Shown here: piece by piece, positions 41,246-50,039 of the stretch | Layout: every line of letters begins with the position of its first letter | Numbering within the stretch: position 1 is the stretch's first letter | Source of the DNA: Cyanophora paradoxa CCMP329 | Taxonomy: Eukaryota > Plantae > Glaucophyta | Assembly: GCA_004431415.1 (NCBI GenBank) | Contig: QPMI01000437.1 | Location: forward strand, 248,001-312,000 | Direction of reading: 5' to 3' | DNA length: 64,000 bases | The notes under the pieces: model-generated | Databases searched by the model: none | Seen by the model: only the letters and a program-made list of their open reading frames with translations | Told to the model about the DNA's origin: nothing | Translations under genes and position numbers: made by a program

Positions 41246-42542
41246 GGGGAGGGGGCGGGTCGGACGGAAGCGGAGGGGGAGGAGAAAAGCGAGGTAGAGC
41301 TGCTGGTGCAGAAAAGCAAGGCACAGCTGCTGGTCCGGACCGCAGAAAAGCGAGGCAGAGCTGCTGGTCCGGACCGCATCACAGTCCGACAGTCCGACAG
41401 TCACAGAGCTCAAATGGGCCCCAAAATTCTTAAGCTTCATGCACCCTCAGGGCCTCGAGCTCCACTTGGCAATCGCAACCTCAAAACTCGAGCTCGCGAT
41501 TAAGAAATATTGGCCGCGCGCGGATCCAGTCTCCACGACATGCATCAGTGACCGTGCACGTCAGCCTATTATGAGCTGGAGGATTGCGCCCCTTCGTTTT
41601 GATTTTTTTCGGACAGACTCAAGCTTGGTATCGGTTCGGTTCGGCCCGATTAAACTATGGGGAGCGATTGGCAAGAGACCGACGCGCTGAACACGTGCTA
41701 GTACGCATCTTAATGCATGTCTAATGCTCAGTCTCTCGCGGACGCGGTACAAAAGTTTCCTAGATGTATGGCCATAAAAAGGCGACGAGGAAAAGGTCAG
41801 TTTCGCGGCGAGCTAGCCGAGCTAGCAGTGCGATCGACCGGCGTCTTATTGCTCCAGCGGTCGAGCCCGGGAAGGGAAGATTGGGGGAGCGGGGGGGCTT
41901 GGGCGGGGGGGCCTGTCGAGCGCTGTCCGACAGCGCTGTCGAGGACTGAAGAGGGGGCCGGGGAGCAGCGACCTCCGAGGCCAACTTTCGCGCGGCGAGG
42001 TTCTGGCGGGAGACCAAAATGTTTCAAGTTTTTCATCTCGGCTGATCTAAAATGCACTTCGTAATTCCTACGTGCCCGGTCTCGCGCAAGTCACTCGCTG
42101 TGCTCCGCTTTATTTAATTTCGGCTGGACTGGTATGGCAAATGTTTCGGAGCGCGTATTATAAGATACGTATATACGTGTGTGTATATACACACACGTAT
42201 ATTCGGAGGCAAATGTTTCGGAGCGCGGATTATAAGATGTATTATAAGATCGAGGGGCCTTCGGCCCGCCCCCGCCCGCTCCCTCCGCCCCCGGGCCCGC
42301 CCGCTCCGCCCGCCCCCGCCCCGGGACCCGTCCCTTTCGGCATCACATGATCATGCCGCCGAACCTCGGAGATCTAGATCGCGCATAGTTCTGACCCAGC
42401 TGCAGGGCCGTGACGTCGCATAGTCTAGGCCTAGGTTTCGCGCTAGAGCTTGAATGCGCGATGTCGGACTCAAGCTTGGTAAATTTTTCGGAGCGCGTAT
42501 TATAAGATACGTATATATATATATATATATACAAGACGGGCG

Positions 42543-44716
42543 AGGATGGGGGGTACGGAAAATTTACGGTAGCGCGACGATTACGGCGGCGCAGCGGGCC
42601 AGGTTTCCCACCCGTGGGTTCCTGATAACGCTGCGTGTCAAGCTGCTCGGAAAGTCGCGCGCCAGCTCCACCCGACCCCCGTAGCCAGAACGCGCTAGAT
42701 AGACCAGCCGGGCGTGCACGGACAGCCGACACGAGCACATCATCACCAATCGCAACCGCCGAAGTCGGTAGCCCGCCCCCGGAGCGCCAGGCAGCCCCGC
42801 CAACCTCGCCGCGTCATCTTTTTTGAATTCCACGGACCCCCGGACCCCACCTGCGCCCTGCGCGGAGCGCAAAGCAATCGCCCTGCCTCTCCCGATAGAC
42901 GATAAGAGCTCTTAAGCAACTGAACTGCCGCCCAGTCCCCGCGCATTGCGCCCCGATGCTGACACTCACTCACTGCCTGTCACACCGCAGACATGAGCCG
43001 ATCATCCACGGACGACACACCGGATGTCGCCGCCATGCCCGGCGAACGACGTAGACCGTGCTTGCGCGACGCTCGCCGGCGCCCAGGCCCCGCGGGCCCA
43101 CGCCCCCGCCCCCTTTCCCCCGGACTGGGCCCAAAGGGCGCCCACCTGGACTCCTCCCCCCCCGAGGCCGGTACAGAAGCGTGTACGCTCGGACCCCCTG
43201 CCCCCCCGTCCGCAGTCCGAGCCAGACGAGGCCCGCCCGGACCCGGCCTTCAAGCCGGCCCCTGCCCTCCCGCTTCAGCGCCCCGCCCCCGCCCTCCGGC
43301 TCCAGCGCCCCGCCCCGCCCTCCGGCTCCAGCGCCCCGCCCCCGCCCTCCGGCTCCAGCGCCCCGCCCCGCCCCCAGCTCCAGCGCCCGCCCCCCCCCAG
43401 CTCCAGCGCCCCGCCCCGCCCCCCAGCTCCAGCGCCCCGCCCCGCCCTCCGGCTCCAGCGCCCCGCCCCCGCCCCCCAGCTCCAGCGCCCCGCCCCCGCC
43501 CCCAGCTCCAGCGCCCCGCCCCCGCCCTCCGGCTCCAGCGCCCCGCCCCCGCCCTCCGGCTCCAGCGCCCCGCCCCCGCCCTCCGGCTCCAGCGCCCCGC
43601 CCCCGCCCTCCGGCTCCAGCGCCCCGCCCCCGCCCTCCGGCTCCAGCGCCCCGCCCCCGCCCCCCAGCTCCAGCGCCCCGCCCCCGCCCCCCAGCTCCAG
43701 CGCCCCGCCCCCGCCCTCCGGCTCCAGCGCCCCGCCCCCGCCCTCCGGCTCCAGCGCCCCGCCCCCGCCCCCCAGCTCCAGCGCCCCGCCCCCGCCCCCA
43801 GCTCCAGCGCCCCGCCCCCGCCCTCCGGCTCCAGCGCCCCGCCCCCGCCCCCCAGCTCCAGCGCCCCGCCCCCGCCCCCAGCTCCAGCGCCCGCCCCCGC
43901 CTCCGGCTCCAGCGCCCCGCCCCCGCCCCCAGCTCCAGCGCCCCGCCCCCGCCTCCGGCTCCAGCGCCCCGCCCCGCCACCCCTCTAAGTGCCCCGCCGC
44001 CCTAGCGCCCCGCCGCTCCCTCGCGCCCTTCCCCCGTCGCCCCAGCGCCCCGCCGCCCCCCAGTGCCCTTCCCACGTCACCCCTCTCAGCGCCCCGCCGC
44101 CCTAGTGCCCCGCTGCTCCCCCGTGCCCTTCCCCCGTCGCCCCCGGCGCCCTCCGCCCCCAGCGCCCTTCCGCCGCCGCTTCCCCAGGGCCCCGCCCCAG
44201 TGCTCCTCCACCCCTTAGCCCCCCGCCCTTTGCCCCGGCCCCCAGCGCCCCGCCCCGCCGCCCCCAGCGCCCCGCCCCCGCCGCCCTCTAGCGCCCTGCC
44301 CCGACCCTCGGCGCCCCGCCCCGCTCCCGGCCCGTCACCCTCCCCGCCCGCCCCGCCCCGCCCGCCCCCAGCTCCCCGACCCCAGCGCCTCACCCCGCCA
44401 CCCTCCAGCGCTCCGTGTACCCCACTCCCTGCCCTTCTCCCCCTCCCTACGCCTCGCCCCCCGCCGACCCCCAGCACCCCGTGCGCCTCGCCTCCCCCCT
44501 CCCCCCCTCTCTTCCACAGGGCCAAGGACACCAACGCATCAGGCCCTCCTAAAGCTGTAGATCGATAGCTCACAGCTAGGATAAGATAGCAGGACGTCTT
44601 CCTTCTATGCCGCAGAGCATTTGCGCTAGCCTAGGCGCCCCCCCGGTCGACGTCACCGACGGGGCGGCGGTTGTTGTCCTTAATACGAACATTGCCCGGT
44701 TGGGCTTTTGCAAAAA
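42543..44716 (+). mobile_element. Non-LTR retroposed insertion (family C) with a 16-bp TSD and short A-tail
   Basis: atatacaagacgggcg at 42527-42542 and 44717-44732. Ends in gcttttgcaaaaaa. The empty site is visible in the right IR arm (~49576-49591). Confidence 0.88.
43275..43978. repeat. GC-rich minisatellite, ~21-27 bp unit (gctccagcgccccgcccccgccctccg), >25 copies
   Basis: Directly visible array inside the family C insertion. Confidence 0.93.
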
Positions 44717-44953
44717 ATATACAAGACGGGCGTCAGCGCTAGCGGCAGTAGGCCCGATTACGAGCCTTCGGGATCGTCCTTTACAGAGGGAATTCGAAAA
44801 TTATTATGATCAGGACCCATGGCATGTGCATTTCGATTCTAGATCTGCGGCCGCGGCGAGTCGCAATTAGAACTTCGGAACAGCGTTCCCATTCAAGCAC
44901 TACGCGTACGTGCAATTGACATTGCGTACCATGTATACGTAGATCAAAGCGGC

Positions 44954-46040
44954 TTAAGCATCCTCGACGTAGAGAGTGGCCTGGCTGGCCTCTGCAGCGA
45001 TGTCGGCGAGCTCCGCGTCAAAGTCGGCGTCGATGTCGTCGTCGGCGAACAAGAACCCGTCCATATCCTCCTCTGGCATGGCCTACTCGCGATCGGATCG
45101 GGATTCGAAATCAGGTGCGAGTCATTCGCACGGACGCGATATATCTTGATTGCGACTGGCGAGCTATAGCTGTATAGCTACAGCAAGCCGCTGAGATTCT
45201 AGATCTGCATGCGCACCTGGGTCTCCGAGTCCAGCTGTAAGGCAGTACTTGCTTGGTTCAGCTTGTACTTCTCGAAGCCGCTGCGCATATGCATGCAGAT
45301 TAATATATATTCAGATCTAGATCTTGTCATTGAACTGCGGGGAGAGAATCGAATTCTGAGAGAATCACACACGCACTAGTCGTTGAACTGCGGAGAAAAC
45401 GAGCGGGAAGAAGCAGTGTACATGTATCAAGGCAACTGTCACGAATATATATATATATATATATATATTGGGAAGCTCACGAATCCTTTCGACAGTTCCC
45501 AGCAGGTATCAATCAACTTGTTTGGCTGGTGTGGGGCATTGGTGAGTTTCAGGATGTAGCCATTCTCGCACGATGTTTTTGTCCCGTTTGGCAGTGTCTT
45601 TGGCTTGCAGAGCTCTGCGCAACAACGCTAGCATTAGTATACGCGAACCAGACGTCTCTGAAACAAGTTCGGGAGAACGCACCTATTGATTCCGTGGTAC
45701 TATATTCGAAGCACATGCTTGAGAGAGAAGTCTTCATTATGTTGGGGAGCGTCCACCACTTTCCATGTGGACTTGACCCAATGGTTACGTCGAAAAGCTT
45801 TCCCTGGCACTGCGCCCTGTCAAGCGGCCGCGGGCTGCAAAGTTAACGGCGACGAACGAAAACTCGACTCACGTCGGCGTTCTCGAAAAATTGGACTACA
45901 GATAGCCCGTTGTTGTCCGTTACGTCAGAAACACATTTGGCGTCGTATTTAGGCTTCATGACAGCTCCCCCCTGGTAGGTATATAGGACGTTCTTCACAT
46001 ACTTTTCCGGGTTTTGGAGCGCATATTGAGCCATCCTGGA
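44954..46040 (-). CDS. Unknown Cys-containing protein, paralogue L (5' end not resolved)
   Basis: Exons: ..VQFFENAD | CQGKLF..KWWTLPNIMKTSLSSMCFEYSTTESI | ELCKPKTLPNGTKTSCENGYILKLTN..IDTCWELSKGF | FNDY (11-nt microexon) | GFEKYKLNQASTALQLDSETQ | LYSYSSPVAIKIYR | AMPEED..YVEDA*. All are phase-compatible. Confidence 0.7.
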
Positions 46041-47428
46041 CCTGCAGCTGTGCGCGCAGAAATGTAGGCACCCGTCAGCTGCAGCACAAGTTGCGCATCG
46101 ATATCGATGTTATGATTAGCGACTCGGCGCAGGTTTCTTAAGCTTCCGATGTCAGCGCACGCATATGCATGTGCGCACCTGCCGTTGAAAGCTCAGCGGC
46201 TGCACTGCAGCTGACCCGCCTGCTGTGAAGGCTGCAGCTACCGGTGCCGCAGACTGGCCAGTGGTCACTACTAGGCTAGTCACTACGATACTACAAGGCT
46301 ATGATATTGGACCTCACTGGGCGCAGCCCTAGTCGTGAGTCTCGTGAGTCGTGATCATCCCATGCCATATGCATGATGCATGATTTCGATGATCATGAGT
46401 CGTGGCTCGTACGTGATCGTGCCACGCGCGCCGCACGGCGAGTCGTGAATCGTGAATCGTGACTCGACGGTGAGTCGGACTACTGGAGAACTAGAAATAT
46501 TTAGTACCGCCGGGCACTAAATTACCGCGGCATAAATTACCGCGTTTTAAAACCCGGCCTGCCATAGAACAAAATACCGCGGTATCAATTAAATTACCGC
46601 GTTTTAAAAAACTTATAGGGGGTACTGTATATGGAGCAACTTAGCAGCTGGTTTTTACCGCGGTACCAAATTACCGTGTTTTTACAAATTCTCGGCGCGG
46701 TAATTTGGTACCGCGGTACTAGTAATGTGTTCTACGGTACTAGTGGGCTGCATGTTTATAGTACTAAAAAGTTTTTTGGCTATTTATATTTATAGCGCTA
46801 GCATGGCGAGCTTTTCGAACATTAGTACTATTTCGCGTTAAGTAGTACTAGTAGGCTAGCCTAGTAGTAGCCTAGTAGTAGCCTACCATCACCTCTTTGG
46901 AGTAGGCTGCGAGTCTGTGTATTTTTGGACAGGTACTTCCGACATGATCATAAGCACCGACAGCGGCGCCGGCTAGCCGGGCTACTACTAGCCTACTAGG
47001 CTAGCCTAGTACTACTCAGTGACTGTAGGAATCACAGTAGGATTGCTTTTTTAGCCGATGCTTTAAATTGCCGTATATTGCCGAGAGGCCGCATGCAATC
47101 GGCAATTTTAAGACACGGTAGGGCCAAACAGCCGTTTTTGTTTGGCTCTGACATTGGCTCAATAGAAATTCAGAGTTTCGGCAAAATATCGCCATGGCAA
47201 CTTGGCAATGCCGGTTTTGCCAAGTTGGTCCAATTCGGCAATTTAACTAGTCGAGTACGCGGCAATCATTGAATGATCATGAGTCCCCCAATTGCAAGTT
47301 TGCAACTTGGCATTGTTGGCAATGACACGCTGTGTCAGCCTGTGTGTCAGTGTGACACGCCGGCACTAGTACTAGTACTGCCGCGGCAGCATGCAGTAGG
47401 ACTGTAGGAGTCTGTTACCGTCTGTAAA

Positions 47429-47671
47429 CTGTAAAACATGCAATATCCAGCGTCACGTTATTTCGGCAAAACCCGAAAAATGCGCCGAAATTGTGGTTCG
47501 TCAGCATCATATTTTCGGTAACACAGCCAGTCCGCCTAGGCGGCGGGTACATTGTTCCCTCTTCGGGCGAATTCTGCCATACATCTGCACAATTCTGGCA
47601 GATTCAAATATTCGGCGTCGCGAGGCTTAACGCCGAATATTAAGTGCCGCCGGAGATTTCATGTTTTACAG
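47429..47671. mobile_element. MITE-like element with imperfect ~20-bp TIRs
   Basis: ctgtaaaacatgcaatatcc ... ggagatttcatgttttacag. Non-coding interior with repeated ttcggc/gccgaa motifs. No clear TSD. Confidence 0.5.
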
Positions 47672-48398
47672 TATACGTACTGACTCTGCACTGAGTCTGC
47701 AGCCAGTACTACGGTAGGACCCTACCGTATAATACAATAATATGACGGGCACTTTACTATTTCGGTACCAAATTATGTCGCTTCGGACGCGAAACAACGA
47801 CATAATTTGGGACCATCATAGTAGGGCACGCTCAGTGGTACCCCATCAAATTTACCGTCCCATACAAGCCTGAAAATTATATGACGACATGATTTGGGGC
47901 CGTCAAGAGAAGGGTCAAGTTGTTTTACGACATATATGCATATAAATATCATAGTAAATTTTAAATATGTCCGCAATATTTTTGTGTTACACGGCCGTGG
48001 GGCGGCGTGGCCCATTGGGCCCGTGACGTCGACCGCGGCCGGTGGTCCGTACTACTCCGTAGTAGCTTACTATAGTAGAGTCCGTACGCGTAGTCGCAGA
48101 CTCGCCGAGTCGCACAGACTCAGAGACTCGCAGCACTCACTGAGTCAGTGACTGTCGCACTGTCACAGGCTGTCGCAGTGCTGAGCCTCGGAGAGTCCTA
48201 GTCACCGAGTAACTTAGTAACTTAGTAACGGGCCGGATCATCGGATCGTTGGAAGTCGATCGATATATATCGTGGCCGGACTGCAGCTGAGCAGCCTGTC
48301 ATTTTTGAAGGTGCGCGCAGAAAAGCCGTTCATGATCAGCGCCAGCGCGGCCGCGGCTAGCGCTGCCGCGCGCAGTGCCGCGCACTGCATGTGAGCAG

Positions 48399-49361
48399 CA
48401 TCTCAGTGTCTGAATACGGGTGCCAATGCCCAGAGTTTTCACGAATGGCCTCCGCCAGATTCTTCACGGATGCCGACGTGAGTTATCCCAACTTTTCTTG
48501 TTCAGTCAGCGCGTGGGACTCTTGCTCAGTCAGCGCGCGCAGCAAAAAGGGACGCAGGAGGTTTACCAGGATCAGGAGAAAGGATGGACCGATCTCAGCG
48601 ATTCTCTCAAGAAAAACGTGAGCTCCTTCTGTGCAGGCGCGAAGGACAAAATCAGTGCGTTAGCGCCCGCCGTCATCATGCGTGCAAGCTGTTGTCTGAT
48701 CCGGATCCGTCGATTCCGCAGCTCTTTGCAAACCTGCCTACGTCGGCAAACGCACCATAGTTGATGGTCGGGGCAACCAGACGGTGGAGGATATCTGGAC
48801 AGCTTGCGAGGACGGGATAACCAAGGCTCTTGAAAACACACGTACAGGGTGGCTGTCGCAAAAGTGCGAAAACCTGACAGGCTCGGTGCGCACCCCGAGC
48901 TCGAGGGCCCTGGGGCCTTCACAGCTCGCGATTGACGATCTCCCTGATACAAATGCATGCCATTTAATCCAGGACAACGATTCGTACGTCTTCGTTTACA
49001 TTTGCCCATCTTGAGCCACTTGTTCATCGTTCAAATCACTGAATTGTCTCAGGTACGTAAAGTTCAAGATTGAACAAATTCAGCTGCTGGACTCGGAGAC
49101 CCAGGTGCAGATCTAGAATCTCAGCGGCTTGCTGTAGCTATACAGCTATAGCTCGCCAGTCGCAATCAAGATATATCGCGTCCGTGCGAATGACTCGCAC
49201 CTGATTTCGAATCCCGATCCGATCGCGAGTAGGCCATGCCAGAGGAGGATATGGACGGGTTCTTGTTCGCCGACGACGACATCGACGCCGACTTTGACGC
49301 GGAGCTCGCCGACATCGCTGCAGAGGCCAGCCAGGCCACTCTCTACGTCGAGGATGCTTAA
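48399..49361 (+). CDS. Unknown Cys-containing protein, paralogue R (5' end not resolved)
   Basis: Exons: ..ARFFTDAD | QKGTQ..KGWTDLSDSLKKNVSSFCAGAKDKI | TLCKPAY..WTACEDGITKALEN..LSQKCENLTGS | LAIDD..QDNDS | YVKFKIEQIQLLDSETQ, then the same last two exons as paralogue L. Stop at 49359-49361. Confidence 0.7.
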
Positions 49362-50039
49362 GCCGCTTTGATCTACGTATACATGGTACGCAATGTCAAT
49401 TGCACGTACGCGTAGTGCTTGAATGGGAACGCTGTTCCGAAGTTCTAATTGCGACTCGCCGCGGCCGCAGATCTAGAATCGAAATGCACATGCCATGGGT
49501 CCTGATCATAATAATTTTCGAATTCCCTCTGTAAAGGACGATCCCGAAGGCTCGTAATCGGGCCTACTGCCGCTGACGCCCGTCTTGTATATAAATATAT
49601 ATATATATATACGTATATACGTATCTTATAATACGCGCTCCGAAAAATTTACCAAGCTTGAGTCCGACATCGCGCATTCAAGCTCTAGCGCGAAACCTAG
49701 GCCTAGACTATGCGATGTCACGGCCCTGCAGCTGGGTCAGAACTATGCGCGATCTAGATCTCCGAGGCTCGGCGGCATGATCATGTGATGCCGAAAGGGA
49801 CGGGTCCCGGGGCGGGGGCGGGCCCCGCACGGGGGGCGGGCGGAGCGGGCGGGCCCGGGGGCGGAGGGAGCGGGCGGGGGCGGGCCGAAGGCCCCTCGAG
49901 GGGCGAAGGCCTAGGGCCAGGGGCGCGGCGATCTTGCATAGAGTACAGGGATCTTACATTTATAACTCATTTCATTGGCTAGAGCTCTAGAGCGGCCTCG
50001 GCGGGGCGGGGCGGGACGGGCCGGGGCGGGGCGGGGGGC

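Follow-up and report, generated by a model that had tools for sequence, protein, structure and literature searches.

Partial conversion between duplicated genes, leaving a sharp boundary of identity, is known from the human gamma-globin genes HBG1 and HBG2, and the combination of a variable exon with a conserved acidic terminal exon is known from the var/PfEMP1 genes of Plasmodium. In the palindromes of mammalian sex chromosomes, gene conversion takes place from arm to arm (for the human Y palindrome P6 see PMC3723533, and for the X palindromes PMC8981503). The locus described here lies in the glaucophyte Cyanophora paradoxa CCMP329 (GenBank assembly GCA_004431415.1, contig QPMI01000437.1, positions 248,001 to 312,000 of the forward strand; this stretch of 64,000 nucleotides (nt) is referred to below as the window, and positions are counted from its first letter). 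It consists of two genes arranged head-to-head, 2.4 kb apart, that end in the same sequence. The reading favoured here, with a probability of roughly 0.72, is that this is an ancient inverted duplication of a lineage-restricted orphan gene, both copies of which are spliced and constrained, and that their 3' ends, over ~815 nt, have recently been homogenised by conversion.

The two copies are inverted relative to one another on a single molecule, and their perfect repeat comprises 474 nt at 100% identity (44736-45209 against 49106-49579), which gapped alignment stretches to 45235-44717 and 49086-49592. Further out comes another matching block of ~300 nt (42250-42531 and 49598-49899), past which, at 42250 and 49899, the arm alignment found no inverted homology; leaving aside a 2.17-kb insertion in the left arm, the full arm length is ~815 nt. 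The right arm is unbroken (49086-49899), its outer ~300 nt being a retroelement-like unit with a (TA)n end, while the left arm is split into an inner part (44710-45235) and an outer part (42250-42542). Between them the arms hold the end of exon 5, the last intron, the tail exon, the 3' untranslated region (3'UTR) and 3' flank, and a downstream retroelement fragment. Substitutions number zero in the inner ~500 nt and two in the outer ~300 nt, where there are also three microsatellite indels (42250-42542 relative to 49578-49899); apart from such changes of microsatellite length, the arms differ by two 6-nt insertions, both on the left, AGC-GCT-AGC (44725-44733) and GCA-TGC-GCA (45207-45215), and these are the only differences between the inner left arm and the right arm. 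On the gene side the identity starts within exon 5, 19 nt before the exon ends, at GCTGGACTCGGAGACCCAG (..LDSETQ). This jump in mid-exon had been described in an earlier note, made by a model from the sequence alone, and is real; the same note carried the identity on through two introns, the tail exon and the 3' flank, of which the last two stand, but only one intron lies inside.

Both genes are transcribed and are spliced at matching positions, an 11-nt micro-exon included; these number six if the predicted 5'UTR intron of the left gene is counted. The evidence comes from contigs of three public runs (X1, X2 and X3), belonging to three studies and taken, as a guess, to be RNA; splice joints across the locus are present in these contigs and are missing from those of the DNA run X4. 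For the right gene (+ strand) the joints are 48310/48434, 48477/48543, 48654/48722, 48885/48973 and 48983/49053, all GT..AG, and for the left gene they include 45873/45809 and 45683/45614, which read CT..AC on the + strand and hence GT..AG on the - strand. Each gene has five coding introns, whose phases are 0,1,0,2,0 in both cases and whose lengths (left/right) are 63/65, 68/67, 93/87, 96/69 and 134/128 nt. The matching intron positions and phases reported in the earlier note were thus borne out by RNA contigs, which confirmed the splicing of both genes while altering some of the exons proposed: 48886-48972, previously read as coding, is an intron, and the micro-exon had been overlooked in both genes (its position in the left gene being a predicted one). 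Transcripts of the left and the right gene alike pass from ..GAGACCCAG into the tail exon. That observation bears on whether the duplicated 3' end could be an artefact of assembly, given that long-read mis-assembly can create perfect inverted repeats. Transcripts from opposite strands that splice to the same tail require a copy of it on each strand, and an independent short-read contig (record 12) links the left arm to the retroposon adjoining it, which makes such an artefact extremely improbable.

For comparison of the pair the exons were joined locally into full proteins, which are of 208 amino acids (aa) on the left and 166 aa on the right, in place of the ~230 aa first suggested, with 160 and 118 aa respectively lying upstream of LDSETQ. 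Aligned locally with BLOSUM62, these variable parts score 74, whereas shuffled sequences score 27.9 +/- 4.7 (maximum 55, z 9.7, with 0 of 2000 shuffles reaching 74); they share 31% amino-acid identity over 105 aligned codons, including four conserved cysteines. On this comparison the variable parts are truly homologous, a point on which the earlier note had staked its proposal in advance. The DNA upstream of the identity boundary, said there to show no obvious similarity, indeed shows none of significance in the introns (z 0.1-2.2) and a marginal signal in the coding sequence (CDS; z 3.1). Nonsynonymous divergence (dN) between the upstream parts is 0.92, synonymous divergence (dS) is saturated and not computable, and third positions are 32% identical. 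Near-identical non-coding DNA therefore stands beside homologous sequence that is far more diverged. Because of the low amino-acid identity, the saturated synonymous sites and the unalignable introns, the inverted duplication is ancient, as had been proposed, and all five coding intron phases have been kept since; one corollary is that micro-exons of 11 nt can persist across a saturated duplication.

Selection at the level of the protein cannot explain the identity of the 3' ends, since the intron, the 3'UTR, the flank and the retroelement fragment are identical as well, and identity across the non-coding part of the arms therefore requires that one arm has been copied onto the other. We infer that this took the form of non-reciprocal transfer, i.e. 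gene conversion, between the inverted copies; the arm-to-arm conversion of a constant region put forward in the earlier note is supported by an identity that spans intron and 3' flank. The order of events shows in the sequence. A retroelement fragment ending in (TA)n first joined the arm, and ~815 nt were then homogenised by copying from arm to arm; later came the 2.17-kb retroposon, along with both 6-nt insertions, two substitutions and the changes in microsatellite length. Homogenisation is dated as older than the insertion (42543-44709, outside the gene pair), which splits the left arm. Within this insertion lie a long satellite, C-rich and with a 27-nt unit, and a 3' part of ~250 nt that is unique; it has an A-rich 3' end, is flanked by a 13-15-bp target-site duplication, (ta)tacaagacgggcg, and occupies a (TA)n-adjacent site in the left arm; its appearance is that of a retroposon inserted into an arm already present. 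The outer 300 nt of both arms, together with two fragments at 42135-42250, resemble the 3' ends of a related family of (TA)n-ending elements.

A unit bounded by ~815-nt terminal inverted repeats, in a genome rich in mobile elements, might also be thought of as a mobile element in its own right, in which case the whole 7.6 kb would be a foldback or terminal-inverted-repeat transposon with two genes aboard. This is highly improbable, as there is no target-site duplication at 42250 and 49899 (the flanks, ..tattataaga and ggggcgaagg.., share nothing), the k-mer depth is 8-13, as for single-copy DNA, against 150-320 for true repeats in the spacer, and the arm ends fall inside the retroelement fragment without defined termini.

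Whether the homogenisation took place once or repeatedly is a separate question, to which a second version of the locus, present in public runs, is relevant. The single-nucleotide polymorphisms (SNPs) that mark it are shared by the RNA runs and a DNA run of 2012; left exon 1 of the window type is also present in the RNA runs. In this second version the tail starts with GCCATGTCA in both the left and the right transcripts (the T variant), where both arms of the window have GCCATGCCA; its transcripts merge in one tail contig, which differs from the tail of the window at 8 of 105 places, and a T>A change at 45236 lengthens the shared tract by 2 nt. Likeness of the arms within a version and difference between versions hints at a pattern of concerted evolution, albeit one read from unphased mRNA contigs. 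The competing view is that the 3' end of one gene was replaced once and recently, by a single conversion or template switch of ~815 nt with no exchange continuing thereafter. The two substitutions in the outer 300 nt and none in the inner 500 nt are not significantly different, and the arms lack GC enrichment, both of which are in keeping with one event. Set against this is the fact that the second version has a different tail that is again common to both genes, with the tract boundary moved by 2 nt, and this would need at least two independent homogenisations, or else one before the versions split followed by co-ordinated change. A single replacement is unlikely, and recurrent conversion is likely from these sequences, although the two are weakly resolved from one another.

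Several points weigh against the reading preferred here, that of an old pair with 3' ends homogenised by conversion, or at least against parts of it. Near-identity over all 815 nt would fit one recent event equally well. The non-coding arms show no enrichment in GC (~51%, against 39-62% in other introns) and thus give no hint that GC-biased conversion has gone on for long. The DNA run has an arm identical to that of the window next to gene bodies of the second version, which complicates the argument from concerted evolution. The second version may represent an allele, a variant found in another strain or a separate locus, and the first of these would drop out in a haploid genome. Lastly, searches and models made with single exons (predicted local distance difference test, pLDDT, ~59) carry no evidence on the function of the proteins.

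Comparison of the public DNA run with the window gave 27 substitutions in 885 nt at 45180-46064 and nine in 413 nt at 48582-49004, with 0-1 differences in spacer contigs (46228-48507, ~1,800 nt) and none in the left arm (44700-45209, 510 nt). Substitutions between versions are thus concentrated in the gene bodies (Fisher p ~1e-12 when 27/885 nt is compared with roughly 1/1,800 nt for the spacer). Exons of the left gene (21/487) are if anything more divergent than its introns (6/320; p 0.07). An island of divergence confined to the transcribed variable parts might arise by ectopic conversion from further copies, from balanced alleles of great age, or because a second locus is present.

Coding SNPs that separate the versions number 21 in the left gene, with 11 amino-acid changes, and five in the right gene, with two; from these small numbers come dN/dS values (NG86) of 0.47 and 0.18 respectively. 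By this measure both genes are under purifying and not diversifying selection, and on that account the proteins are probably functional. They are soluble and acidic (isoelectric point, pI, 4.3 and 4.1), with a core in which the four cysteines are conserved, followed by the identical tail of 42 residues, of which 15 are acidic and none basic, with F, L and I interspersed. Neither has a signal peptide or transmembrane segment: averaged over 19 residues, the Kyte-Doolittle value nowhere exceeds 0.5, a maximum reached in the tail. The start codons are fixed by in-frame stops upstream. These properties have a bearing on the proposal, contained in the earlier note, that a variable region on a cysteine scaffold is diversifying as in recognition or effector families. 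In such a family diversifying selection would act on a variable head while conversion shielded the constant module. The architecture would suit this, with N-terminal exons that have diverged, cysteines that are conserved and a tail exon that is identical, as would the excess of substitutions in the gene bodies. However, it is hard to reconcile with proteins that have no signal peptide or membrane segment and with dN/dS values that are not above 1; no third copy was found by tblastn in the 64-kb window, and no relatives in any collection searched; and one cysteine of the supposed scaffold, that of 'NACHLIQ', falls in the intron at 48886-48972. The proposal is therefore distinctly unlikely.

Searches of family, structure and sequence collections were made exon by exon. 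Pfam, with single exons and E values up to 10, returned only a chance match to Enolase_N (E 0.24), and exon 3, the tail and the left exon 1 matched nothing meaningful among PDB sequences. A word search with the right exon 3 in its 104-aa open frame gave no candidates, a degenerate DNA pattern for DMDGFLFADDD had 0 matches in metagenome and viral contigs, and a search for related loci with exon 3 and the left exon 1 gave no confirmed relative. The sole match of a two-sequence HMMER profile of exon 3 in an exhaustive search of 1.84 billion representatives, P0001, proved to be an artefact, its 48 repeats having individual scores between -2.8 and 1.6 bits. AlphaFold models of exon 3 and the left exon 1 alone had pLDDT values of 58.8 and 59.5, which are not high enough to search by fold, and look-alikes of two exons in the ESM Atlas scored 0.77-0.86, which is noise level. 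Rfam and tRNA scans of the window found nothing, and neither did Pfam with ten long open reading frames outside the gene pair. The EEDMDGFLFADDD of the tail has some likeness to the C-terminal peptide of ribosomal stalk proteins P1/P2 (..DDDMGFGLFD), but this presumed likeness failed when tested: the tail matched neither Pfam (Ribosomal_60s, E up to 10) nor PDB sequences, and its motif is not C-terminal, 27 more residues coming after it. As a low-confidence guess, the shared acidic tail might act as a common docking peptide, with the diverged N-terminal domains giving each copy its own specificity. A broader version of the idea, that the tail is the constant module of a wider, glaucophyte-specific family of palindromic loci with varied N-terminal domains and one docking peptide kept uniform by conversion, is unlikely too, if a shade less so than an effector family; were it true, the second version, divergent by 2-4%, would be another such locus and not an allele.

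Taking the left gene (- strand) exon by exon, the first coding exon (45873-46047) has its ATG at 46034-46032 and runs for 54 codons to ..FFENAD in phase 0; RNA contigs cover 45873-46050 and carry the joint 45873/45809. A 5'UTR intron is predicted from the sequence at 46048-46178 (G|GTGCGC ... CACAG|), in support of which there is a contig (X3 contig 9) that ends at 46050 with five unplaced letters, without proving a joint; the corresponding intron of the right gene is established by an RNA joint. Exon 2 (45683-45809, 127 nt, ending in phase 1) is bounded by joints to 45873 and 45614 (X1/X2), and exon 3 (45481-45614, 134 nt, encoding LCKP..SCENG..C) is covered by RNA pieces over its entire length, with splice sites ag/gtgagc. 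The micro-exon is predicted at 45377-45387 (TTCAACGACTA, flanked by ag and gtgcgt): exactly 11 letters are left unplaced between 45481 and 45280 (X1 record 1, X2 record 5), and this is the sole candidate of the form ag-11nt-gt that keeps the frame. An intron of the left gene holds a second, degenerate copy of micro-exon and acceptor at 45324-45334 (ccgcag|TTCAATGACAA); having no GT donor, this copy has the look of a short stretch duplicated in tandem within the intron. Exon 5 (45217-45280, ..GFEKYKLNQASTALQLDSETQ) has its last 19 nt in common with the right gene and is represented by RNA pieces from 45216/7 to 45280, after which a loose end reads G+CCATGTCA into the tail exon. The left copy of the latter (44954-45082, AMPEEDMDGFLFADDDIDADFDAELADIAAEASQATLYVEDA) has 42 codons and a stop, and is identical to 49233-49361.

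The right gene (+ strand) begins with a 5'UTR exon at 48216-48310, the 5' end of which is not defined; it has no ATG, contains in-frame stops, and is separated by the 5'UTR intron (48311-48433) from the first coding exon, the GT..AG joint being found in X1, X2 and X3. The first coding exon (48434-48477) has its ATG at 48445, encodes MASARFFTDAD and ends in phase 0. Both joints of exon 2 (48543-48654, 112 nt, ending in phase 1) occur in three runs, and exon 3 (48722-48885, 164 nt, LCKP..ACEDG..C) is covered by RNA pieces at 48722-48886, which are joined to 49053 with 10 letters in between. Those letters, ACAACGATTC, between 48886 and 49053 in X1/X2 contigs and as a loose end in X3, place the micro-exon at 48973-48983 (GACAACGATTC, flanks ag/gtacgt). 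Exon 5 (49053-49104, SYVKFKIEQIQLLDSETQ) is represented by an RNA piece at 49053-49105 with CCATGTCA as its loose end, and the tail exon and stop (49233-49361) by an RNA contig at 49231-49335 that begins with exon-5 letters.

All 6-nt length differences that were met with have the form X-rc(X)-X, where rc denotes the reverse complement; besides the two in the left arm they lie at 45414-45422, 45823-45831 and 48894-48902. Those between the window and the second version read TGT-ACA-TGT, CGG-CCG-CGG and GAG-CTC-GAG. In the arms, ~500 nt have acquired two such footprints and not one substitution, so that the process behind the footprints seems to be faster there than point mutation.

The central spacer between the 5' ends (46180-48215, 49% GC) is full of short repeats of high copy number, with k-mer depths of 50-320 compared with ~10 in unique DNA. 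Repeat nests are found at 46504-46831, 46996-47159 and 47324-47979, as are many small palindromes (e.g. TACCGCGGTA), and some DNA contigs jump 239, 1,314 or 1,663 nt within the spacer, with short anchors, which may mean that it is polymorphic for repeat insertions. The region 44950-49400 as a whole forms a low-GC island (CDS 51-55%, GC at third codon positions 63-69%, spacer 49%) in a window of 64% GC; in this genome it is unusual for genes to have so low a value, which may have a bearing on their origin or level of expression. The published genome of Cyanophora paradoxa has 67.6% GC and a mean intron length of 86 bp and is probably haploid (PMC6704402), a description with which the GC content of the window and its short introns agree.

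What this locus offers is a fresh instance of a known process, arm-to-arm conversion, acting on an orphan gene pair; taken alone it does not reveal a new biological mechanism. It is a small-scale case of partial concerted evolution, validated by RNA, in which ancient paralogues that are dissimilar in their DNA share a homogenised last exon, intron and 3' flank. It could serve for measuring how fast conversion proceeds, and over what tract length, in a protist that has been little studied, and it adds an expressed, constrained protein family without detectable relatives. Of the described systems, var/PfEMP1 provides an analogy only, in that splicing joins an N-terminal coding part that has diverged to an acidic C-terminal exon that is conserved; the sequences are unrelated, and the present genes lack a transmembrane segment, an export signal and a visible large family, and are under purifying selection. 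HBG1 and HBG2 resemble the pair in being paralogues that are mosaics of a homogenised and an older, diverged block with simple-sequence repeats at the tract end, to which a (TA)n run and some G-rich repeats correspond here, in the outer portion of the arms; however, they are direct repeats and similar throughout, whereas the present copies are inverted and their DNA is saturated outside the tract. As in the sex-chromosome palindromes, inverted repeats around a unique spacer are near-identical, non-coding sequence included, through intrachromosomal non-reciprocal exchange. Unlike in those palindromes, no GC bias is visible in the arms, and the scale is different: there entire genes lie inside arms of 10 kb to 1 Mb, which keeps the gene copies identical, whereas here the arms measure ~0.8 kb and take in the last exon and a half, with the result that two old, diverged genes share a common 3' module.

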